Positions 36,056 to 58,984 of a stretch of 64,000 nt of DNA are shown here, piece by piece. The position numbers and the translations under genes were made by a program. The notes beneath the pieces are model-generated. The model saw nothing but the letters and a program-made list of their open reading frames with translations. It ran no database searches and was not told where the DNA came from. Source of the stretch: Piromyces finnis finn (lineage: Eukaryota; Fungi; Neocallimastigomycota); contig MCFH01000027.1 of the NCBI GenBank assembly GCA_002104945.1, positions 124,001 through 188,000 on the forward strand, in the 5' to 3' direction. The number at the start of each line of letters is the position of its first letter. Positions within the stretch are counted from its first letter, which is position 1.

Positions 36056-36815
36056 TGATACAAGATGCATAGAAAAATATAATATTTTAAATATTTTATG
36101 AATAATATCTAATCCTTTTATAAATTGTATATCAATTACTAATGATAATAATAATTAAACTATATTAGTATAGATTATTATGACGCAAATGTTACACATA
36201 CATTAGAATAATTAGTTACACAAGAAAGGAAAAGATATAAAAGAGTGTGTTAAAGCAGAAGATATCAAGAGAGAGAACTTTTCATTTATAAATAATATTT
36301 GATATTTTAGTTTTAAGTATTAGTTTTATTTTATTTTATTTTTATATTAATAGTTTTAGTTTAAGTTAGTTTTAGGTTAATAATTACGTATTTAGTATTT
36401 ATTATATTTCCTTCAATTTAAATATTAGTTATAAAAGAAAAGAATATTTATTGTTTATTTTTACTATTTCAGAAAAGTTATATTTTATCATTAATAATAC
36501 TTTCATCAACATATTTTTATATTTACACATTATATTTAACTATTTATATTTATTCAATAATAACTTTCGATCCTATTAGTATTGAATGTTATTAATGTTA
36601 TAATCATAATAATAATAATAATTAAATAAAGAATCTTTAAACCAAAATCTATTTAATTATATTATTATAAAATTTATTATTTTTATTATTTATTTTTATT
36701 ATTATAAAATAGAAATAAATACAATATTAACTAATATATTATTCATATATCATTCCCTATTGCTAACGTTCATAATTATATTTTATTTATGGTGTTTTTG
36801 AAATATATTGCATCA
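36056..36815 (+). repeat. Element A 5' LTR
   Basis: Direct repeat of 57138-57897. Confidence 0.93.
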
Positions 36816-36822
36816 TAAAATT

Positions 36823-36839
36823 TGGTGGAGAATCCGGGC
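36823..36839 (+). promoter_or_regulatory. Primer-binding site of A, complementary to a tRNA-Ala 3' end
   Basis: TGGTGGAGAATCCGGGC has reverse complement GCCCGGATTCTCCACCA, the ..UCCACCA end typical of tRNA-Ala. It lies 7 nt after the LTR. Confidence 0.8.
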
Positions 36840-37070
36840 GTAGCAATATTGAATAATATAAAACATTAATAGTATTATTTCTATTCTAATTATATTTATT
36901 TTTTTTTTTATTATTTTTAATTAAAATAAGTTCTTTTATATAAATAAAACTTTCTACTATAAAACTATTAAATATACACAAATATTATATATATATATAT
37001 AAAATTATTATAACAATAATATATAAGAAGTTATTATATAAATTTATTTTAAAATAAATAAATAATTAAA

Positions 37071-41500: not shown

Positions 41501-41848
41501 CCGCCTAAAAATATTAAACAATTACGTTCGTTTTTAGGTGCTATTGGTTATTATAGAAAGTTCATTTCTAACTTTGCTCAAGTAGCCAAACCTTTATATG
41601 ATCTAACAAAAAAGAATGTTACATTTGAATGGAATGATATTTCTAATAATGCTTTTGATACTCTAAAAAATAAATTAGCTATCGCACCTATTCTTACTCC
41701 TCCAGATTTCAATAAACAATTTATAATACGTACTGATGCATCTAAATCAGGAATAGGTGGTGTACTTATTCAATTAGATAATGACGGCTTTGAAAAACCT
41801 CTCTATTTTGAAAGTAGAACATTATCTAATTCAGAATTAAATTATAGT
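38525..41848 (+). pseudogene. Element A Pol, 5' part (protease, RT, start of RNase H)
   Basis: In the -1 frame relative to gag. One in-frame TAA at 39659-39661 with the same frame continuing. Motifs FLDSCAS, WSSPVVLVPKK, VDYRKVN, MPFGL.NAPATFQ, YIDD, RTDAS. Cut by B after ...ELNYS. Confidence 0.88.
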
Positions 41849-42572
41849 TGTAAAGATATAATATATATCTTTAAATTATTTAATAATTAATTAATAATTA
41901 TTAAATAATAATTTTGATATTTTTAATGAAAAATTATTTATAAAATTTATTATATAAATTTTAAGGAATAATTAAATAAATATTAATTTTAAAATATCAA
42001 AATTGGAAATGAAATTTGGATAAATATTTAAATTAATGGATAATTAAATTTAAATATTTTAAATATTCAAATTAAATCTTAAAAAGTTCTTATTTAATTA
42101 AAAATAGTTTAATAACTTTAGCGTAGTTTTAAATTAGTATTTTTTAATAGTAAATATATAATAAATAGTATTATTAATATTTAATTAATATATAGGTAAT
42201 ACATGGACTGTATTCAATTTGTAGTTTACTCAAATTGAATCAAAAGTGTATTTAATTAGTTTTAGTTTAGTTTTATTATTTTATTATTTAATTAAATTAG
42301 TATTAAATTAGTTTTGTTTATTTTATATTGAATATATGTATAATTAAATAGAATAGTATATTAAAATATAATTTGTAAAAAATATAAATACATGTAAAAT
42401 TTCATAGTTAAACGATGTAATTGTTATTGACTATAGTTTAGTTAATAACTAAATAAGAATAAATAAAAGAGGATATAAATAAATTTTGTTTTGTTTTTAA
42501 TTTTTTATTTTTAGTGTTTTTGTTTTATTGTAAAAAATTTTATAATCTGTTTTAAATTTTAAAATTTTTACA
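41849..42572 (+). repeat. Element B 5' LTR
   Basis: Direct repeat of 54427-55150. Confidence 0.95.
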
Positions 42573-42583
42573 ATAACAATTAC
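42573..42583 (+). promoter_or_regulatory. Self-priming PBS of B
   Basis: ATAACAATTAC is the exact reverse complement of GTAATTGTTAT at 42417-42427 inside the LTR. Confidence 0.8.
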
Positions 42584-42649
42584 CTTTTGCATAATAAAAC
42601 ACGTTATAAAATTTTTCTAATAAAACATATTTTAAATTTTTTTTTCATA

Positions 42650-42805
42650 TCTACCGCGTTTCTAGGAAAATCTACCGTGTGTATAGGGAATCTACCGCGT
42701 TTCTAGGAAAATCTACTGTGTGTATAGGGAATCTACCGCGTTTCTAGGAAAATCTACTGTGTGTATAGGGAATCTACCGCGTTTTTAGGAAAATCTACCG
42801 CGTTT
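42650..42805 (+). repeat. Tandem 20/21-bp subunits (about 41-bp period) in the B leader
   Basis: TCTACCGCGTTTCTAGGAAAA alternates with TCTAC(C/T)GTGTGTATAGGGAA. Confidence 0.9.
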
Positions 42806-42906
42806 CGGAATTTCATCGTACCTTCTGAGGGCTAGTTAACTTGGTGCTTGTTACTCAAAGGTCTTCCATATATATTGAATATATTTAATTTTGTTATAAT
42901 ATTTTT

Positions 42907-42955
42907 AAGAGCTCGTCTAACACCGTTTGACAGGATAGAGTTACGACGACATCTT
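42907..42955 (+). other. Single copy of the conserved leader hairpin in B
   Basis: AAGAGCTCGTCTAACACCGTTTGACAGGATAGAGTTACGACGACATCTT, homologous to the repeat unit arrayed in D. Confidence 0.75.
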
Positions 42956-45135
42956 AACTAAAATATTATAAAAAATTAAATATTTATAACATAATCATAT
43001 TGGAAGAAATAAACCATCTCTTAGATAAATTACACTTAAACGAAAACATGGAACGCCAAGGAGCGTCCTTGAGGATAGTTAATGATCCTCCGGTTTTCAC
43101 AGGCCGCAGACAAGAACTAGACGGGTTCTTGACTAGGGTTGAGCTAGCTATTGAAGCTAACCCTGATAGATTCGTTAATGATGAAGCGAGAGTCCGCTTC
43201 TTGATATCCTACTTTGTTAATAGACCTTTAGAATGGGCCGCCCGTTTAAGACAAAATAACGACGCCGTTCTAAGGAACTATGATCAATTTATTACTGCCC
43301 TTCGTACCAATTTCGGGGATCCGAATAATGATACGATTGTTGCAAATGGAAGACTTTGCAACATTAAACAAAGAAAATTTGGTAAGGTGTTCGAATACAT
43401 TAACGAATTTCAACGCGTTAGCCAAAATTCGAATTTCAATGAAGCAGCAAAAATATACATGTTCGCAAAAGGATTACATCCAAAAATGCGTGAACATTTA
43501 GCTGTAGTGAATCCAAATCCCTCTCAATTAGAGCGTCTTTATTCTGATGTCCTTAGTATTGAAAATCTTACTAAGAGAAATGATATCAGTGAATATTACA
43601 TGACGCATCAAGACCGAAGAAATTATAACCAAAATGATCCTATGGATGTGGACTTATATAGGATCAGTTTAGGTCAAAGAAAGGTTAATTACTTCCCTCC
43701 TCATAGAAGTAATTATGATGAAAATAAAATAAATCGCACTGAGGCTAAGAAGAAGGGAGTTTGCTTTACTTGTGGAAAGTCTGGACACTTTCAATTCAAT
43801 TGTCCAAACAAAAAGAAACCAAAAAATGTAAAAATTATCAAGAGATGCTATTCAGAAGACGAAGCTAGCCCTTCAATCAAGAAAATTAAAAAGGATAATC
43901 TTAATTCCAAGGGAACTTCAAACATATTCGAAATTCATAAAGGTGAAAAGAAAAATATCATTGATTTTTATATCAAAACCAATGATATTGATGAAGTCAA
44001 GGCTAAGGTACTTATTGATTCTGGTTCCGATCTTAATTTCATCCACCCCGAGTTCGCCCGAGTCAATAATATTAAACTTTCAAATATTGCTGAATCTTTC
44101 AAGGTTTCTGGTTTAGGGCAAGGTACATCTACCGTGAAAAAGGAATCCGAAAAGTGCATCCTTCGTTTGAGAAATCATTACGAAATCATTCAATTATATG
44201 CACTTAGAATTCCTGAAGTTGATATAATTCTTGGAGTACCTTGGATCGAGAAACATTGTCCGGTTTATTATCACGATTCCTCCAAAATTGCCTTTAGCTC
44301 CGGATACTGTGCTCGACACTGTAATGTAGGTAAAAGGAAAAATAAGGGCACAATCAATAAGAATAGGGAATCTATGACATCATCAAGAAAAGGGAAAGAA
44401 GCTGTCTTGGATAGTGAAAACGAACAATCCTATTGTAGTGACCTTGGTTCCCCCGAATATGACGAATCCTCTTATTGTGACTCCAGTGATGACGAGGAAA
44501 CTGTTAATATTAGAGGTCGAAGAACCTCTGTTAAAACCATTAGTAAATTAGATAGTTTGGATAAAATTAAATGTAGTAACAGTTTAAATAATAATAATGA
44601 TAATAATTGTATTTTTAAATGTATATGTAATGACATTAATTGTATTGATGAAAATTTAAATAAAGATAATAATTCGGTCACTGGACCAAAACAGTACTCA
44701 TTTTCAAAAAACGTGTGTAATAATAATAATTCTCGTGTATTAAATTCAGTTAGTAACTGTAATGATTTATTTTGTAATATTATTAATAAATGTAAAAGTG
44801 AAAGTGATAATTTGAATAAAGATAAAAAATCTATTGAAATTCCAAAACAATATTTATTATTTAAAGAGGTTTTTAATGAAAAGAATTGTAATATTTTACC
44901 TCCACATCGTGAATACGATTGTGAAATCCGATTAAAGGATAATGCTAACTTGTTTTATGGTCCTCTTTATCCTTTAACTGAGGCAGAGAGAGATGAATTA
45001 AAAAATTATATCAATGAAAATTTAGAAAAAGGTTTCATTAGGAAATCTTCATCTCCTGCCGGTGCACCAGTTTTATTTGTCAAAAAGAAAGATGGATCAT
45101 TAAGACTTTGCGTTGATTATAGGAAACTTAATGAC

Positions 45136-45566
45136 TGTAATGAATACTAGAAATAACTAAATTGTCTTAGTGGTTAGTAGCTAAGACTTTGAGTCTGAAT
45201 GACACTAGTTCGAGACCTCATAGATACTATTTTAAAAAAATTATTTTATTTTATTTTATTTTTAAATTTTATTTTATATGAAGATTATTGATTGGTTAAG
45301 AATTTTAAGTTGAAAAAATTTTATAAATTAATTTAAAAAATTTTTAGTATAAATACGAGTGAATTTTCCCAAATATTTTAAAGAATCGAGATTTTATTAA
45401 TAAATAATTATATTATTAAACACTAACTTATTAAGTTAAATTCTATGTGTTTTTAATGATATTTTTATAAATTAATAATTTACAGAATATTTTAAAGTGT
45501 TAATATTACTAAGTTATTTAGTAAATATTATAATTTGTTTTATTGTTAAAGACACATTTCTTTACA
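45136..45566. mobile_element. Solo LTR C (431 bp) inserted in the RT of B
   Basis: TGTAAT...TTTACA termini, TSD ATGAC at 45131-45135 and 45567-45571. B's frame resumes (RKLND|MTIRNSYP). Confidence 0.9.
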
Positions 45567-47749
45567 ATGACATGACAATTAGAAATTCATATCCTCTTCC
45601 GTTAATTGGTGACTTATTGGATAGAGTGAAAGGTGCAAAATACTTTACTAAGTTGGACTTAAAGTCTGCTTATAATTTAGTTAGAATCAAAGAGGGTGAT
45701 GAATACAAAACTGCCTTTAGAACAAGATATGGGCATTTTGAATATCTCGTCATGCCTTTTGGTTTAAAGAATGCACCAGCTACGTTTCAACATTTCATAA
45801 ATGATGTCCTTAGTGATTACTTAGATGATTTTGCTATATCATATATTGATGATATTCTAATATATTCAAATAGCCTAGAAGAACATCATGAACATGTTAA
45901 AAAAGTATTGAAAAAATTATTAGAAAATAATTTATATGTTAAGTTAGAGAAGTGTGAGTTTGATGTTTCAGAAACCACTTTCCTTGGTTATGTATTATCC
46001 AAAGATGGTCTGAAAATGAATAGAGATAAAGTTAAAGCTATCCTCGACTGGCCTGTTCCTACAAACGTTAAAGAAGTTCAATCCTTTATTGGATTATGTA
46101 ATTATTATAGAATTTTTATTAAAGACTTTGCGAAAATTGCTAGTCCTCTACACAAACTTACTAGGAAAAATGTTCCTTTTAATTGGGTTTCTGAGTGTCA
46201 AAATGCATTTGTTACACTTAAAAAGGCTTTTACTTCAGCTCCTATCTTAATGAACCCTGATAGCAACAAACCTTTTATTGTTGAGACTGACGCTAGTAAC
46301 TTTGCTGTCGGTGCAATTCTTTCACAAGAATTTGAAGGGCAATTGCACCCTATTGCTTTTATTTCATCTAGCTTAACCAAGTCTCAAAGAAACTATCAAA
46401 TTTATGATAAAGAGTTGCTCGCTATCAAAGTGGCTCTTGAAGAATGGAGGCATTATCTGGAAGGTGCAAAGCATCAGTTCATCATTTATACTGATCATAA
46501 GAATTTAACCTTTCCAAGAAAGCCTGAGATGCTCTCACAACGACAGATAAGATGGTATGAATTTTTATCAAGATTTGATTTTAAGTTAATTTATAGAGCT
46601 GGAAAAAAGTCTGGTAAACCTGATTTGTTATCCAGACGTAGTGATCATATCTGTAATATTTATAATAATGATAGGATTAATGAAAATATTGAATGTAGTA
46701 ATTTTAGTTGTAATTTTATTTCATGTAATGTAATTAATTCTTTTAATAAAGATGATTCTTTAATTAATTCTATTCTATGTTCCTTAAAAAATGATGATTT
46801 ATATAATAAAGTTTGTGTATTTCTGTAAAGATATAATATATATCTTTAGATTATTTAATAATTAATTATTAATTATTAAATAATAAATTAATATTTAGTA
46901 AAACTGATTATAAAATTTTTGAGTAAATTTTATGGAATAATTTAATAATAAATTATTTTATAATAATTCCGTTAAATTTAAATTAAGATAAATATTTAAG
47001 TTTAAGGAATAAAAGAATTTTAATTAAATTTAAATATTTCAAATATTTTAAATAATTAAAATATTTTTCAAATACTTTTTATTTAATTTTAGAATAGATT
47101 ATACTTTTTTATTTAAATTTAGAATAGTTTAATAATTTTAACTTAGTTTTAAAAATAGATTTATTTATATTTCAATAGGAAATATATTAAGAATAGTATT
47201 GATAATATTAAATTAATTTATAGAAAATACATGGGCTTTATTCAATTTTGAGTTTACTCAAATTGAATTAAAAGTATAATGAATTAGTTTAGTTTAGTTC
47301 TGTTATTTTATTATTTAATTAAATTAGTTTTGTTTATTTTATATTAAATATATGTTTATTTAAATAGAATAATATATTAGAATATAATTATGAAAAAATA
47401 TAAATACATGTAATTTTTATTTGTTAAATCGATGTAATTGTTATTTTCAATTTTTTAATTATTAACTATTATATAGCTAATAATATTTTTAAGAGTTTAA
47501 ATAAAATGTTTTCTTAAAATAAAAATTTAATGTTTTATTTTTTTATTTTTGTGTTAATAAAAATTGTTTTGTTTTAAGTATGAAATCTGTTTTAAATTTT
47601 ATACTTTTACAATAACAATTACCTTTTCTTATTAAAAAACACGTTTTATATTTAATAATAAAACAATTTTTATTTTCTGAAGTTACAACATTGGGAATTG
47701 CTACCGTAGAAAATTTGGAACTTTTCGGAAATTTTTTTTTTGTCTACTT

Positions 47750-48040
47750 GAGTAGCCTACCTTGTGGAACTATTTATGGTGTAACTTCTGTCAGTGTAAC
47801 ATTAATTTTGTGTTACCCTACTTTGTGAAATTCTAAATAAATTTTGTGAAACACTACTTTGTGGAACTATAATTGTGGAATTTTTACCTACTTGTGGAAC
47901 ACTACCTTGTGAAATCCTTCCTTCGTGGAATTCTTTTGAACGAATCTCGTGGAACTTTGCTTGTGGAACTTCTACTCTGTGAAACTTTCCTTTTTATATT
48001 GGAATTGGAATAAGTGTAACTCTACTGTATGGAACAATGA
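47750..48040 (+). repeat. Imperfect short tandem repeats (CTAC)CTTGTG(G/A)AA in the D leader
   Basis: More than ten variants of TTGTGGAAC / TTGTGAAA seen directly. Confidence 0.8.
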
Positions 48041-48154
48041 AATCTTTATATATAAAATCTATCTGTAATACTAATAGAAATATATTTATGAAATACTCTT
48101 GTTTTTAAATTGATGAAACTCTTTTAAAATTAAATTTAATTATAATATACTATA

Positions 48155-49657
48155 AAAAGAACTCGCTCGACACCGTTTGATAGGATAGAGTCTGAGCGAC
48201 ATCTTTTATACATAGTATATTATAAATTAAATTGGATATATACAATTAAAAGAGTAAATTAAATCAAAAAATTAATTGCAAAGTAAGAAAATTAAAACTT
48301 ATTTAAAAAGAAAGAAAATTAAGAAAAAGTTAATAAAATTTTAAAATTATTTAAATATATTGAGAAATAAGTGAATTAGTATGTTGATTTCACTTATTTG
48401 AATGAATTATTAATTGTTATTTTGAAATGAACTTATTATATACTTAAAAGACCTCGCTCGACACCGTTTGATAGGATAGAGTCTGAGCGACATCTTTTAA
48501 ACATGGTATATAATAATTATAGAATTATTTAAAATATATTGTATGAAAATTAAAATTTTGATATTTATTAATTAAAATGAAATTGAGAAATAAGTGAATT
48601 AAAATGTAAATATCACTTATTGGAAAAAGTTATTTTATTGAAATATATTTATTATATATTATAAAAGACCTCGCTCGACACCTTTTGATAGGATAGAGTC
48701 TGAGCGACATCTTTTAGACGTAGTATATAATAATTTTAGATTTATTTAAAATACATTGAGAAATATGAAAATTAAAATTTTGATATTTATTAATTAAAAG
48801 TAGTTGAGGAATAAGTTATCTTATTGAAATAAATTTATTATATACTATAAAAGACCTCGCTCGACACCTTTTGATAGGATAGAGTCTGAGCGACATCTTT
48901 AGATATTGTATATAATAAATTAAATTGAATATATAATTAAAACAAATTAAAATTTGATTATATAATAAGTAAATTTGAAATGAATTTATTATATACTTAA
49001 AAGACCTCGCTCGACACCTTTTGATAGGATAGAGTCTGAGCGACATCTTTTAGATATAGTATATAATAAATTAAAATTAAGAAATGAATTAAAATTTTAC
49101 AATAAAAGTAAAAGTAATAAATGTGTAAAGTTAGTTAAATAAATAAATTATTCTTTATTATAATAAGATTTCGATGACACCTTTTTAGAGGACAGAGTCA
49201 GATCGACATCTTTTTGGGAAATAGTATATAATAAATTAAATTGAAAATACTATAAATTAATTTAACTTGAAAATTTGAAATATATAATTTTATTTAATGA
49301 AGTTAGAAAATGATTTGATATTTAAAATCACTTTTAAAATAATTTAACTTCATACTAAATAAAGAACTCGACGACACCTTTTCTTTAAAGGATAGAGTCA
49401 GGTCGACTTCTTTAATATGAAGATACAATATAAATTCGATTAACTAACTAAATAAATAAAATATATTCAAGGATTATATATTATTAATTAAATTAGATAA
49501 ATACAATTAAGAAGTTTATTAAATAATATATTAAAATATTATGAAGTAATACGAAAACGAGCTTAAAAAAAAATAATTTAATTTCATTGTAATAACATGT
49601 TTTATACTTTATAAAGAATTCGCTGACACCAGTTGATAGGATGGAGTTGACTTCTTT
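48155..49657 (+). repeat. Array of 8 conserved ~50-nt hairpin motifs separated by AT-rich spacers
   Basis: Copies at 48155-48207, 48446-48498, 48663-48715, 48849-48900, 48999-49051, 49165-49212, 49361-49413 and 49613-49657 (degenerate). Main consensus AAAAGACCTCGCTCGACACCTTTTGATAGGATAGAGTCTGAGCGACATCTTTT. Confidence 0.95.
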
Positions 49658-50219
49658 TATATAAATGTGTATTTTATATAACTGAATATTTGACTAAATA
49701 GAAAATTCTTAATAATTAGAATATAAATTTAAAGCATTTTTAATTTGATTTGAATTTATCAACAAAAGTCAATACAAATTTAGTTATTTAAAAAGTTATA
49801 CATTTATTAAAAAAAAAAAAAAAAAAAAAATTAATTTTATATTTCGTAAATTAAGATAATTTGAATGTAATAGTTTATTAAATAATTCATTAAACAAATG
49901 ATTAAGATTAATAATTAAAATAATTTGAATTCAATATGAGGAGGTTTTACAAATTTAGTTGTTAAATCAATTATGTTTTTTATAATTAATAAATTAAAAT
50001 AAATTAATTAAATAAAGAATTTCTTATAATTGTAGAATAAATTCACAAATTTAATTTGATTTGAATTTATTATAAAGAAGTTATTGTATATCTAGTTAAT
50101 AAGTTTATATTTTTATTAAGAAGTAAGTTTTATATTTAAAAGATTCAAATAACTTGAATAAATTAATATAGTAGCTTTGATTGAATAATTATAAAGTTAA
50201 ATAAATATATAATAAGAAA

Positions 50220-52080
50220 TGAGTGTAATATTTTTTTATTCTTAATAATATGATGGTAGTGAAATCAGAGCTAGAAAATTAATCTATTCTGGATCTGTTC
50301 TTAATTTCATTTAGTATTGTAGAATTAGAAATAGCTATAATAGAAATTAATGAGGAATAGTTTTAGTAATAGTAACAATTTGATAATATAATAGTTAGTA
50401 TTAATAATAATTAAAAAAAAAATAGAATTAATAAATACAACAAATGAAAAAAAAAATATAATAAAATGTAATAAATAGAATAAATTAATAAATAGAATAA
50501 GTTAATAAATATGATAAATGTAATAAATATAATGAATAAAACAAATATAAATTAATGTAATATGTATAATAATTATAAGAGTTTTTAATAAATGAATAGT
50601 TTTTATGTACTTAATAAAACGAACTTTATAAAGGAAAAAAAAAAAAAAAAAAAAAGATTTTAATCTTTATACAATTCTTTTTAATGGAAGTATAATGAGA
50701 TTGATAACTAAAATTACTATATATTGATTGTAGGAAATTAAATGATATAATTATTGAAATTCATATATTCCTTTAATCAATAAATAAGATAAATGGAGTA
50801 AAATATGTTTTTAAACTAAATTTAAATATATCAATAGCTTAGTAATAATTAAATAAGGTGATGAATTTAAAATTGCTTTAATCTTTATATGGCATTTTTA
50901 ATTTATTATCATACCTTTTATTCAAAAATGTATCAGCTCTATTTTAATATTTTAAGTGATGCTTTTGATGAAGTATTTTAATTACTTTATAATTAATAAT
51001 ATTTAGTACAACATTATGTATATGTTTATATCAATTCTGTGATGTTTTATTGATGATATTTAAATTTATGAATTCATTGTTAAATTTTTAAAAAAAGAAA
51101 TAATTTTATAATACCATATATTGATAAATTATAAAATAAAAGAGAATTATAAATATGCTAAAAGTATTTTAAAAATGTCTAAAAATGATAAATTTGTTAA
51201 TTAAATTATAGTATTTACTTGATGACTTGATACCACTTTTGTTTATTTAATAATAAGATTAAAAAAAAATAGTGGTATAGTTAATATAATTATTGAATGA
51301 TGTTTTTCCATTATTATTAATGAATGTTAATTTTTTTACAAATATTTTATTACTAAGAATTTTGTTATATTTATTTGCTTAATAATAACCTTTAAAAAAA
51401 AAAAAAAGTTCCACTTGGTTTAAAGTTTGTACAATAATAAAAAACATTTAATACTCTTTAAATGCTATTTTCTTTATAATTTTAGAATTGTCTGTTTGAT
51501 ATATTTTATATAAATTTTATCACAGACTTTTCATTTAAATGAGAGGGTGAACGAGATATTGTTCCAATATCTCCGTTGGTTAATAAAATCGAATTGATTG
51601 TTATATTGGAATCTACTTATAATATTTTATTGTAATCAATCAATCAATTTCAATTTTATACAAACTATGGATTTAATTTAAAATTTAATATTGAAATTTC
51701 TTCAGCTAATAAACCAAAGAAAGTTGAACAGATTACTATAAGTATTAATAAAAAGTATTAAAATTGTAAAATAGAATTTTAATCATGCATAAGAAGATTA
51801 TAAAAGTCATGATGATCAAGAAGAATTGAATTTGAAACTTAAGTAAATGTTTTGTTTTGAATACTTAAATAAAAATGTTAATAGAAAACAATTTATAAAT
51901 AACCATAATCTGAATATAAAAACAAATGGATTCTTGATGATTAAGTTTTAGATAAATTATTAGAATTATGTATAAGTAACAAGAATGATAATAAGAGTAT
52001 AAATAAATTAAATACTTATATATTTTTTTAACAATGTTATGATTTAGAAAAAGTAGTAACCATTTGTTATTTAAATTTCT
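50220..52080 (+). pseudogene. Heavily eroded pol remnants inside D
   Basis: RARKLIYSGSVLNFI (~50270-50312; B has [15 protein letters not shown]), DCRKLND / GDEFKIA RT remnants (~50730-50900), and GAGAGGGTGAACGAGATATTG..CAATATCTCCGTTG (~51541-51580), which matches B integrase ERVNGILEQYLR. Confidence 0.7.
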
Positions 52081-54426
52081 TCAAGAAAATAATCTCGCAG
52101 GAGCTCGACTTAAAGGGCGAGATTGTAAAGATATAATATATATCTTTAGATTATTTAATAATTAATTATTAATTATTAAATAATAAATTAATATTTAGTA
52201 AAACTGATTATAAAATTTTTGAGTAAATTTTATGGAATAATTTAATAATAAATTATTTTATAATAATTCCGTTAAATTTAAATTAAGATAAATATTTAAG
52301 TTTAAGGAATAAAAGAATTTTAATTAAATTTAAATATTTCAAATATTTTAAATAATTAAAATATTTTTCAAATACTTTTTATTTAATTTTAGAATAGATT
52401 ATACTTTTTTATTTAAATTTAGAATAGTTTAATAATTTTAACTTAGTTTTAAAAATAGATTTATTTATATTTCAATAGGAAATATATTAAGAATAGTATT
52501 GATAATATTAAATTAATTTATAGAAAATACATGGGCTTTATTCAATTTTGAGTTTACTCAAATTGAATTAAAAGTATAATGAATTAGTTTAGTTTAGTTC
52601 TGTTATTTTATTATTTAATTAAATTAGTTTTGTTTATTTTATATTAAATATATGTTTATTTAAATAGAATAATATATTAGAATATAATTATGAAAAAATA
52701 TAAATACATGTAATTTTTATTTGTTAAATCGATGTAATTGTTATTTTCAATTTTTTAATTATTAACTATTATATAGCTAATAATATTTTTAAGAGTTTAA
52801 ATAAAATGTTTTCTTAAAATAAAAATTTAATGTTTTATTTTTTTATTTTTGTGTTAATAAAAATTGTTTTGTTTTAAGTATGAAATCTGTTTTAAATTTT
52901 ATACTTTTACAATTTCTTAATGATAAAAATTCTTCGTCCCCTCCGATTAGGAATATTAATAAAGTTAAAATTGATAAAGAAGGATTTTTACTTTATGATA
53001 ATTTAATTTATGTTCCTTCTTCACTAAGAACTAGGGTCTTGGAATTACATCATGATTCTATTTCTGCTGGTCACTTTGGTGTTAATAAAACTATTGAATT
53101 AATTAGTAGAAATTTTTGGTGGCCAAAGTTTAGTTATGATGTTAAAAAGTTTATAAAGTCTTGTGAAACTTGTTGTAAAGCTAAAGTTCCAAGACATAAA
53201 CCATATGGTTTGCTTTCTCCTCTTTCCACACCTAATAGAGCTTGGTCGGAATTGTCAATGGATTTTATTGTCGAGCTTCCTAAATCCAAAGACATGACTA
53301 CCATTATGGTTATAGTAGATAGGTTAACAAAAATGGCTCATTTTATTCCTTTAAGATGTTTGCCTACTGCTTCTATAGCAGCTGATGTTTTTGTTAACAA
53401 TATCTTTAAATTACATGGTTTTCCTGATTCCATCATTTCTGATCGAGGTACTCAATTTACCTCAGACTTTTGGAATCGTTTATGTAATTTGTTAAATATT
53501 AAACTTGCTTTTTCTACTGCAAACCATCCTGAAACTGATGGTCAAACGGAGAGGGTAAACGGGATATTGGAACAATATCTCCGTTGTTTTATTAACGAAA
53601 AACAGAATAATTGGGTTGACTTGTTACCTTTTGCTGAATTTGCTTATAACAATACTTTACAGCAATCAATCAACCAATCTCCGTTTTTCGCTAATTATGG
53701 GTTCAATCCAAAATTTAACCCTGAAATCCCTTCAGCGAATAGACCAAATAGAGCTGAACAAAGAATTTTGGATATTACTGAAAACATTAAATTTTTAAAA
53801 GTAAATCTTGATCAAGCAAAAGAAACCTACAAAAAGTATGCTGATCAAAAGAGAATGGAATCCCCAGATTTCGAAGTTGGTAAAAAAGTTTGGTTATTAA
53901 AAGGTATTAATCCTTCAAATAAAAATATCAAAAGAAAACTTGCTGATCAAATGCTTGGACCTTTTGAAATAATCAAGAAGGTAAGCCCTTTAGCATTTGA
54001 ATTAAAACTACCAAACAATTTACGTTGCCACCCTGTTTTTCATGTTTCGTTATTAGAACCTTATAACGAAAATGAATTTGTAAATAGATCAGTAATGAAT
54101 AAAAGAAAAAATGTTAAGTTAACTACTGATACTATTGATAGGATTCCTGATAAGATTATTCAAGAAAGAAATTATCATGGAAAGAAATCTTTCTTGATGA
54201 CATGGAAAAATCTTGACGAAAATACTTGGATCCCGGAAGATCAAATTACAGATGTACAATTGATCCAAGAATTTTATAGAAAAAATAAAAAGTCTAGAAA
54301 AGAAAGTCAAGATCAAGTCTATACAAGGAATAACAATGGTATGATCAAACATAGATATCAACCATTTGTAATTGATATTCCTTCAAAGAAATGATCTCGC
54401 AGGAGCTCGACTTTAAAGGGCGAGAT

Positions 54427-55150
54427 TGTAAAGATATAATATATATCTTTAAATTATTTAATAATTAATTAATAATTATTAAATAATAATTTTGATATTT
54501 TTAATGAAAAATTATTTATAAAATTTATTATATAAATTTTAAGGAATAATTAAATAAATATTAATTTTAAAATATCAAAATTGGAAATGAAATTTGGATA
54601 AATATTTAAATTAATGGATAATTAAATTTAAATATTTTAAATATTCAAATTAAATCTTAAAAAGTTCTTATTTAATTAAAAATAGTTTAATAACTTTAGC
54701 GTAGTTTTAAATTAGTATTTTTTAATAGTAAATATATAATAAATAGTATTATTAATATTTAATTAATATATAGGTAATACATGGACTGTATTCAATTTGT
54801 AGTTTACTCAAATTGAATCAAAAGTGTATTTAATTAGTTTTAGTTTAGTTTTATTATTTTATTATTTAATTAAATTAGTATTAAATTAGTTTTGTTTATT
54901 TTATATTGAATATATGTATAATTAAATAGAATAGTATATTAAAATATAATTTGTAAAAAATATAAATACATGTAAAATTTCATAGTTAAACGATGTAATT
55001 GTTATTGACTATAGTTTAGTTAATAACTAAATAAGAATAAATAAAAGAGGATATAAATAAATTTTGTTTTGTTTTTAATTTTTTATTTTTAGTGTTTTTG
55101 TTTTATTGTAAAAAATTTTATAATCTGTTTTAAATTTTAAAATTTTTACA
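54427..55150 (+). repeat. Element B 3' LTR
   Basis: Direct repeat of 41849-42572. Confidence 0.95.
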
Positions 55151-55155
55151 ATAGT

Positions 55156-55419: not shown

Positions 55420-55480
<61 letters not shown>

Positions 55481-57137: not shown

Positions 57138-57897
57138 TGATACAAGATGCATAGAAAAATATAATATTTTAAATATTTTATGAATAATATCTAATCCTTT
57201 TATAAATTGTATATCAATTACTAATGATAATAATAATTAAACTATATTAGTATAGATTATTATGACGCAAATGTTACACATACATTAGAATAATTAGTTA
57301 CACAAGAAAGGAAAAGATATAAAAGAGTGTGTTAAAGCAGAAGATATCAAGAGAGAGAACTTTTCATTTATAAATAATATTTGATATTTTAGTTTTAAGT
57401 ATTAGTTTTATTTTATTTTATTTTTATATTAATAGTTTTAGTTTAAGTTAGTTTTAGGTTAATAATTACGTATTTAGTATTTATTATATTTCCTTCAATT
57501 TAAATATTAGTTATAAAAGAAAAGAATATTTATTGTTTATTTTTACTATTTCAGAAAAGTTATATTTTATCATTAATAATACTTTCATCAACATATTTTT
57601 ATATTTACACATTATATTTAACTATTTATATTTATTCAATAATAACTTTCGATCCTATTAGTATTGAATGTTATTAATGTTATAATCATAATAATAATAA
57701 TAATTAAATAAAGAATCTTTAAACCAAAATCTATTTAATTATATTATTATAAAATTTATTATTTTTATTATTTATTTTTATTATTATAAAATAGAAATAA
57801 ATACAATATTAACTAATATATTATTCATATATCATTCCCTATTGCTAACGTTCATAATTATATTTTATTTATGGTGTTTTTGAAATATATTGCATCA
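57138..57897 (+). repeat. Element A 3' LTR
   Basis: Direct repeat of 36056-36815. Confidence 0.93.
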
Positions 57898-58984
57898 TTT
57901 TTGTTAAGGAATGAACATAAATAGTTGAATTAGCTAGAATTTTAGGAATTAATTGTCACGAATACTAGTGAAATTACAATTTCAAGATCACTTGGAATTG
58001 TGAAATCACTTATGAAAATTCAAAATCAACAAATATTTTATTTTCAAATAAATTATAAAATTTTATTAAGAAATATTTAAAAATTTAGAAAAGGTTAAAA
58101 TATGACCTTAACCCTTAATAATTTTTATAATAAATAACTTTAACCCTTATCGTTAAAATGGAATAAGAAAAAACACGCGTATCTCCTCAACGAATGACGA
58201 TTTTTGAATAAAAATATTTTGGTTATAATTACGTTCGTTAGAAAGCCACGCTCGAGACAAACAACATATCTTAAAATCAGGTCAATATCTCTGCTGGTTC
58301 ACGAGATATTCCAATTTAAAGATATTTTGTTAGCAATGATTAATTGTTTATTCAGAGAATGATCACCCCTGATATATCAAACATAAATCATTCACTCAAA
58401 GTATAAAAAATTATTGTTTAATTAAATTAAAATTATTTTCCGGAACTAATTAACTTTATTTTATAATAATTATTTCAATAACATAATTTATAATCTTTGA
58501 ACTAGAAGATTATAATTATTAATATTATATTCAATGAATTATATTATAATTAAGAAATAATTAATATTATAAATATATAAACAATAGTTATTTTTAATAA
58601 TTAGTAGTAAGTCTTAAGTTTAGCCTTAGTATTATAAAATATATTATGAATATAATCATGTACTAAAAAGTTATTTTAGTATTAAATGTAAAATTACAAA
58701 TAGTATAAATAGTTTAGAATAGTTTTATGAATTAAATCTTTGTAAAGATTATTATCTTATTAATACTTAATAAGTATTACTATTAAATAATCTTATTATT
58801 ATATATATTCTTTAAATAAAATAAAAAGGAATTATTTTAACTATAATACATAATTTAATTATTCATTTATAAATCAATTAAGATTATTTTAATAAAACAT
58901 TTTTTTTCTAACCTAGTTATCTTTTAACCTTTTATTTAATTTAATATTTTAATATTAAATTATAAGTTTAGTAAAACTTTTACA

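Follow-up and report, generated by a model that had tools for sequence, protein, structure and literature searches.

A sense-strand RNA hairpin, multiplied in a gene-less LTR retrotransposon, as a candidate packaging mark

A short hairpin in the leaders of a group of Ty3/gypsy retrotransposons is, on our reading, a new RNA element and a candidate packaging mark for retrotransposon RNA. The motif is structured at the RNA level, on the sense strand, and does not act as a site in DNA. Autonomous elements carry it once or twice, and a gene-less element, D, carries five to eight copies of it in tandem.

We compared the 64-kb window, the whole stretch of DNA that was analysed, with itself and found three nested pairs of direct repeats, each pair 100% identical, belonging to the elements that we call A, B and D. 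Pfam domains of B occur on both sides of D (Gag(CCHC)-PR, RT-RNaseH and IN-chromodomain), and the RT-RNaseH and integrase halves of one further Ty3/gypsy element flank B. Given the nested repeats and these domain halves on either side, D lies within B, and B within A.

36056-36816 and 57138-57898: repeat pair of element A, 100% identical
41848-42575 and 54426-55153: repeat pair of element B, 100% identical
46824-47613 and 52124-52913: repeat pair of element D, 100% identical
41849-55150, + strand: element B, an autonomous chromovirus (Ty3/gypsy) split by D; trimmed to TG...CA, TSD ATAGT
43048-45150, + strand: B gag (capsid and CCHC zinc knuckle) and protease; Pfam Ty3_capsid, Retrotrans_gag, zf-CCHC and RVP_2
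46824-52911, + strand: element D, a non-autonomous LTR retrotransposon (LARD-like); trimmed to TG...CA, 5-bp TSD ATTTC
46824-47611, + strand: 5' LTR of D (TG...CA), from the repeat pair
52124-52911, + strand: 3' LTR of D, from the repeat pair

B has the Gag-PR-RT-RNaseH-IN order and the C-terminal chromodomain of a chromovirus. D has the LTR pair, the TSD, the long interior and the lack of any coding capacity that mark LARD-type elements: the largest ORF in its 4.5-kb interior is at most 76 aa, and the sole coding vestige is an integrase remnant near 51541-51746, accompanied by PPT-side homology. The earlier note was thus right to call D non-coding. All three insertions are very young, with D the last to arrive, so the cis signals of D work today. 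The LTR of element A is followed, after 7 nt, by what looks like a tRNA-type primer binding site (TGGTGGAGAATCCGGGC, 36817-36850); B and D have no such site. Two simple repeats also lie in this region, an A22 tract in the D interior directly after the hairpin array (49809-49830) and an (AAT)20 microsatellite directly after the B 3' LTR (55420-55480).

B had been taken as the autonomous relative of D. In a blastn comparison with default scoring, however, the D LTR together with ~57 nt at the start of its leader was 85% identical over 858 nt to a different family, C (loci L030, L181, L183, L194 and L199), and 73% identical to B, so that family C is the nearest autonomous relative. C has at least five copies, of which two contain ORFs of 1590-1599 aa, and its Gag is 51-53% identical to that of B. 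The suggestion that D takes the particles of B in particular therefore needs revising, as D is closer to C and the stems of its sixth and seventh hairpins are C-like; because B, C and D have a common core loop, either family might be the helper of D. D is both young and successful, with identical LTRs and ~28 arrays against at least five copies of family C, a comparison built on counts that are lower bounds.

To locate the hairpin we used the core pattern ACACC-N(4-16)-GGAYRGAGT. It matched the window nine times, always on the + strand, with eight matches in 48170-49647 and one at 42920-42941, and it had no match in 100 shuffles of the window. The motifs have a GC content of 36-48% and the spacers one of 9-14%, which bears out the initial description of eight GC islands 150-290 bp apart. 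From the first copy to the eighth, start-to-start distances in D are 291, 217, 186, 150, 163, 197 and 252 nt. The element lies 280-540 nt beyond the LTR, a distance that speaks against a part in self-priming at the LTR edge, and the single hairpin of B lies 93 nt upstream of the gag ATG (43048). Bit scores below are from covariance models.

48156-48205, + strand: hairpin D1; 80-84 bits; extended hairpin at ~48129-48237, -33 kcal/mol, z -6.4
48447-48496, + strand: hairpin D2; 78-86 bits; extended fold z -5.3
48664-48713, + strand: hairpin D3; 78-87 bits; extended fold z -4.6
48850-48899, + strand: hairpin D4; 75-82 bits
49000-49049, + strand: hairpin D5; 76-87 bits; extended fold z -6.8
49165-49212, + strand: hairpin D6, stem TCGAT/ATCGA, core ACAGA; 56-63 bits; without the long basal stem
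49361-49412, + strand: hairpin D7, stem TCGAC/GTCGA, 5-bp apical helix; 60-63 bits
49613-49657, + strand: hairpin D8, degenerate, 3' arm deleted; 44-60 bits; fold no better than shuffles
42907-42955, + strand: single hairpin of B; 74-77 bits; extended hairpin at ~42881-42983, -29.2 kcal/mol, z -6.8

Every stem variant reported at the outset is present: TCGCTC/GAGCGA in D1-D5, the D6 and D7 stems listed above, and TCGTC/GACGA with TAAC/GTTA in B. The claim that all eight copies fold fails for D8, whose 3' arm is deleted in the window's D and present in other D copies. We also noticed an exact GGATAGAGT on the sense strand in the RT coding region of B (45619-45627); the model finds no hairpin there, and the match is probably due to chance.

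Across the genome (56 Mb) the core pattern had 231 matches, compared with 2 for a reversed-pattern control; these comprise ~28 D-type arrays of 5-8 copies and single copies upstream of gag. Searching the genome for gag returned the B family, 89-100% identical, and numerous sister families that were 48-61% identical. We built one covariance model (R1) from the window copies and another (R2) from the first matches, and applied them to the fetched leaders. The motif was found in 47 of the 53 loci searched, which were B-clade leaders, where it lies on the gag strand, and a few D-type arrays; five of the six loci lacking it (L195, L201, L202, L204 and L211) have a truncated or disrupted gag, and the sixth (L205) has a gag match with an internal stop codon. 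Between the motif and gag are 18-270 nt. The sister families keep the architecture, but their P2 reads UUGUUC/GAAUAA instead of UCGCUC/GAGCGA, their P4 reads CUG(N)/(N)CAG instead of CC/GG, and in the 3' loop AUAGA is replaced by AUCGA, AACGC or AGAGA. A search pattern written for the variant forms had 144 genomic matches and none in the control.

Four metagenome lineages, with Gag 41-54% identical, also have the motif.

L226: Gag 54%; P3 GCC/GGU
L222-L224: Gag 47%; P4 CAG/UUG
L232/L233: Gag 41%; P3 GGC/GCC, P4 CAG/CUG
L221: Gag 53%; copy within gag

These diverged versions upstream of gag, in sister families (Gag 41-55%) and in metagenomes, are new here. Two gag relatives with 140-580 nt of leader had no motif (L230, with a leader of 578 nt, and L231, with ~230 nt), and the covariance model found none in element A in the window; the motif is therefore not a general requirement. 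L227-L229 (Gag 33-34% identical) are too short upstream and were left out of this comparison. The 14-base core pattern also occurs in at least 119 metagenome stretches, but among the matches listed the covariance model, run on 80 loci, gave a best score of 19 bits (E 0.84) and nothing convincing, and we rejected these matches as chance. Two unrelated metagenome contigs (L037 and L072) hold the core pattern three times at an exact 67-nt spacing; the model does not match them, and they represent some other repeat. D itself was found in four public runs, as contigs that break at the repeats.

The motif consists of four helices, P1 to P4, that stack as a single unbranched rod. At the junction of P3 and P4 is a fixed asymmetric 1x5 internal loop, in which a single A on the 5' strand faces A-N-N-G-(A/C) on the 3' strand and which is bordered by nearly invariant C-G pairs; a one-base bulge separates P2 from P3. 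The fixed positions are the 5' C-A-C, the 3' G-A-N-N-G-N-G, both C-G pairs next to the loop and the basal U-A of P2, while the stems, bulge and apical loop are otherwise variable with pairing kept. Standard pairs fill 95.6% of the pair cells across 27 distinct sequences, as opposed to 34-42% when partners are slid by 1-3 columns. In 12 of the 17 base pairs both sides have changed, a number equalled in 2 of 500 shuffles, in alignments that were fitted by the covariance model and are therefore biased towards the structure. Single-sequence free-energy folding regained the P1-P2-P3-loop-P4 layout in most families.

The strand on which the structure acts can be read from its wobble pairs. On the + strand we counted 34 G·U cells and 3 A·C cells; the latter, which the opposite strand would show as G·U, are all in decayed copies, and at two positions G·U is fixed throughout whole families. 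The covariance model gives the + strand 44-80 bits and the - strand no more than 22. This asymmetry and the strand-dependent scores identify the motif as a sense-strand RNA structure. Its fixed internal loop and free stems form the pattern expected of a hairpin that would be read by a protein through the internal loop.

The ~50-nt unit first described stands as a motif, but in B, family C and D1-D5 it is merely the tip of a ~100-nt hairpin. There, 12-22 further AU-rich pairs extend it (-28 to -33 kcal/mol, z -4.6 to -6.8), placing the motif on 35-40 bp of near-perfect helix, and differences in the extended stem among array units are compensated as well. Families II-IV lack the long basal stem and retain the core. 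A permissive Rfam 15 search (E up to 10) yielded nothing relevant, the best overlap being an unrelated bacterial sRNA that scored 24.8 bits (E 2.6) where its family threshold is 51.4, which agrees with the initial impression that the motif resembles no described family. On the sense strand of B and D we found no long-range partner complementary to the conserved 3' core. Nor is the loop a kink-turn, which has tandem sheared G·A / A·G pairs after a 3-nt bulge: the non-bulged strand reads G-A-C-A-(P4) and allows just one G·A, because the C at position 2n pairs in P3.

Copy number differs between families. B, C, II and IIb have one hairpin, so the statement that the autonomous relative has a single copy is correct for B, but families III and IV have two, one in the leader and a second ~340-360 nt downstream. 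This second copy (for example L180:635-700, - strand) covers gag codons ~33-54, where the coding sequence is homologous to that of B and aligns with B Gag free of indels, and a metagenome relative keeps the in-gag copy through synonymous and pair-preserving changes. Because the coding constraint acts on the same bases, the structural evidence is weaker for this copy. Both the in-gag second copy and the strand test are new here. At the corresponding spot, B gag has only a faint resemblance to it (GAAGC...GAGAGUCCGCUUC, 43147-43200).

D copies have 5-8 hairpins each, separated in the window's D by spacers of 100-241 nt. The D1-D5 motifs are 96-100% identical, differing at 10 of 496 aligned sites (2%), whereas in the ±70 nt on either side 402 of 1243 sites (32%) differ and indels are frequent. 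Two old D-like arrays, L212 and L213, have decayed in core and stems alike, and so give a picture of neutrality for such arrays. With covariation across families whose Gags are 41-55% identical and with the 34:3 ratio of G·U to A·C, the contrast between motifs and flanks upholds the earlier proposal of a cis-acting RNA element under selection.

We hypothesize that the hairpin is a handle by which a CCHC-bearing Gag, or another particle protein, would pick genomic RNA for packaging. Autonomous elements would present one handle in the leader, or two, in the leader and at the start of gag. The gene-less D would rely on the proteins of its relatives, and its multiplication of the hairpin to 5-8 tandem copies would give it a higher avidity for borrowed Gag. 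We give roughly even chances to a packaging-type recognition hairpin multiplied in the parasitic D. Structure, strand, conservation, amplification and the recent mobility of D are observations, from which we infer the binding partner and the packaging role. Retroviral packaging signals lie in the 5' leader and extend into gag, the retroviral Psi is bound by the zinc knuckles of Gag NC, and non-autonomous elements that borrow particles, such as VL30 and ETn, also carry Psi elements. The hairpin has two features of Psi, being part of sense genomic RNA in the 5' leader and at the start of gag (G·U asymmetry; 18-270 nt upstream) and being kept by a trans-mobilised non-autonomous element (D, with no genes, 100% identical LTRs, a TSD and 5-8 copies). 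The CCHC knuckle that Pfam identifies in B Gag is consistent with packaging.

Among the functions that had been proposed, Gag binding or packaging seems the best fit. A translation element is unlikely, because D encodes nothing and has nevertheless retained and multiplied the motif, and a dimerisation signal of the kissing-loop type is unlikely too, since the apical loops differ in length and sequence and are not palindromic. The small self-cleaving ribozyme, also on the original list, would suit the compact conserved core, and there is a precedent for ribozymes in non-autonomous LTR elements, the retrozymes of plants; like D, these are gene-less LTR elements bearing a structured RNA motif, in their case a hammerhead. 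Our motif has no hammerhead core, lies in the leader and not in the LTR, and is shared by autonomous relatives. It lacks the CUGANGA/GAAA core, a second loop domain and a pseudoknot partner, and no Rfam 15 ribozyme family matched at E up to 10; as a single unbranched rod with one internal loop it fits none of the hammerhead, hairpin, twister, pistol or hatchet classes. Eight cuts would moreover fragment an RNA that is evidently copied whole, as judged by the identical D LTRs and the intact arrays in ~28 copies, and we regard a ribozyme as extremely unlikely. Only slightly less remote is an array of protein-binding sites in DNA, like the Su(Hw) array in the 5' UTR of Drosophila gypsy, itself a Ty3/gypsy element. 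The layout is comparable, with short GC-rich repeats and AT-rich spacers between the 5' LTR and gag, but the Su(Hw) array works as double-stranded DNA, and a double-stranded site would have neither inverted repeats that covary around a fixed asymmetric core nor a strand-specific 34:3 excess of G·U over A·C; on these grounds we rejected a gypsy-insulator-type array. The ~100-nt rods could also be small-RNA precursors (Dicer substrates) or silencing decoys, as the near-perfect 35-40-bp helix in B, family C and D1-D5 would allow. However, families II-IV and D6 keep the core without the long basal stem, and conservation is focused on the internal loop instead of the duplex arm, which makes this explanation very improbable.

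Two further alternatives accept the hairpin as functional. In one, the single hairpin has a function, but the extra copies in D arose neutrally, when template switching or unequal crossover took place in an AT-rich leader. Copy number does vary from 5 to 8 among D copies, copies 6-8 are diverged, copy 8 is broken in the window's D, and the 8-copy state may be ancestral instead of favoured. Yet near-identical D1-D5 motifs sit between spacers that differ at a third of their sites, the GC islands endure in surroundings of 9-14% GC, and old arrays do decay, and we consider the neutral account improbable. In the other, the reader of this RNA hairpin is a host factor, or the hairpin acts in a different post-transcriptional step on which D also depends, such as nuclear export (as for the MPMV CTE and the MusD transport element), RNA stability, targeting to the sites of assembly or an escape from silencing. 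A host protein could equally read the conserved core: the most conserved bases (5' CAC and 3' G-A-N-N-G-N-G) are common to families with Gag identities of 41-55%, which fits one common reader, and export elements act in a dose-dependent manner. Against this, loop positions 2, 3 and 5 are family-specific (AUAGA, AUCGA, AACGC, AGAGA), which suggests family tuning, and the motif is absent from the unrelated element A in the same cell, although neither point is decisive. We see a host reader, or a role in export or stability, as the main rival, though distinctly a minority explanation.

A packaging mark of this kind would have both likenesses to and differences from known RNA elements. Like Psi (SL1-SL3 in HIV-1, UCUG in MLV), the hairpin is structured sense RNA that runs from the 5' leader into gag and exposes unpaired purines; unlike Psi, to which it has no homology in sequence or structure, it is one self-contained rod with a 1x5 loop that recurs as a module, and its binding and packaging roles are putative. 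The MPMV CTE and the MusD and IAP RNA transport elements are also long hairpins, with conserved asymmetric loops that are read by proteins and with dose-dependent action, but they are located close to the 3' end, function in exporting unspliced RNA and have no sequence similarity to ours. The Xist A-repeats, with about eight GC-rich hairpin cores, U-rich linkers and a role as a multi-protein platform, offer an analogy of architecture only, being unrelated in origin and sequence. In ssRNA viruses, repeated structural motifs are reported to serve as packaging signals (PMC8206606). There, several short hairpins with a small common feature act together, as we propose for D, but those repeats belong to autonomous genomes, whereas here the repeat number separates the parasite (5-8) from its helpers (1-2).

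For LTR retrotransposons, packaging determinants are still undefined, even in yeast, and the Gag binding sites of Ty1 and Ty3 are 'not precisely defined' (PMC4974528). The natural variants with one, two and 5-8 copies, together with the loop variants, form a mutational series for studying recognition, dose and helper-parasite specificity. RNA catalogues would gain a new family with this hairpin, which also flags a highly active set of elements in an AT-rich genome. If the packaging-signal and hyperparasite reading is true, a gene-less element wins particles by offering more handles than its helper. We advance only tentatively, as a stronger claim with somewhat less than even prospects, that this is the first discrete, sequence-defined Gag-recognition signal of a Ty3/gypsy element, multimerised as a hyperparasite strategy, with loop variants setting the helper-parasite pairs.

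Other repeats occur near the hairpin. Families II-IV have, probably within their LTR and some 800 nt before the leader hairpin, a 45-nt near-perfect hairpin (AAAGATATCAAAC...GTTTGATATCTTT), seen at the following positions and others like them.

L191:1120-1164: 45-nt hairpin
L190:962-1006: 45-nt hairpin
L182:844-888: 45-nt hairpin

We rejected it as a copy of the motif, as it is a plain palindrome that the model scores at 20-25 bits on both strands. In the leaders of B and D, the stretch from the LTR to the hairpin also contains another repeat, distinct from the motif. That of B (42649-42806) has 3.7 copies of a 41-nt unit (ATCTACCGCG...GGGA) with 97% matches, and that of D (about 47690-48010) has ~ten loose copies of CTACYTTGTGGAAC. 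The theme common to both, CTACC...GGAA, suggests another cis element.
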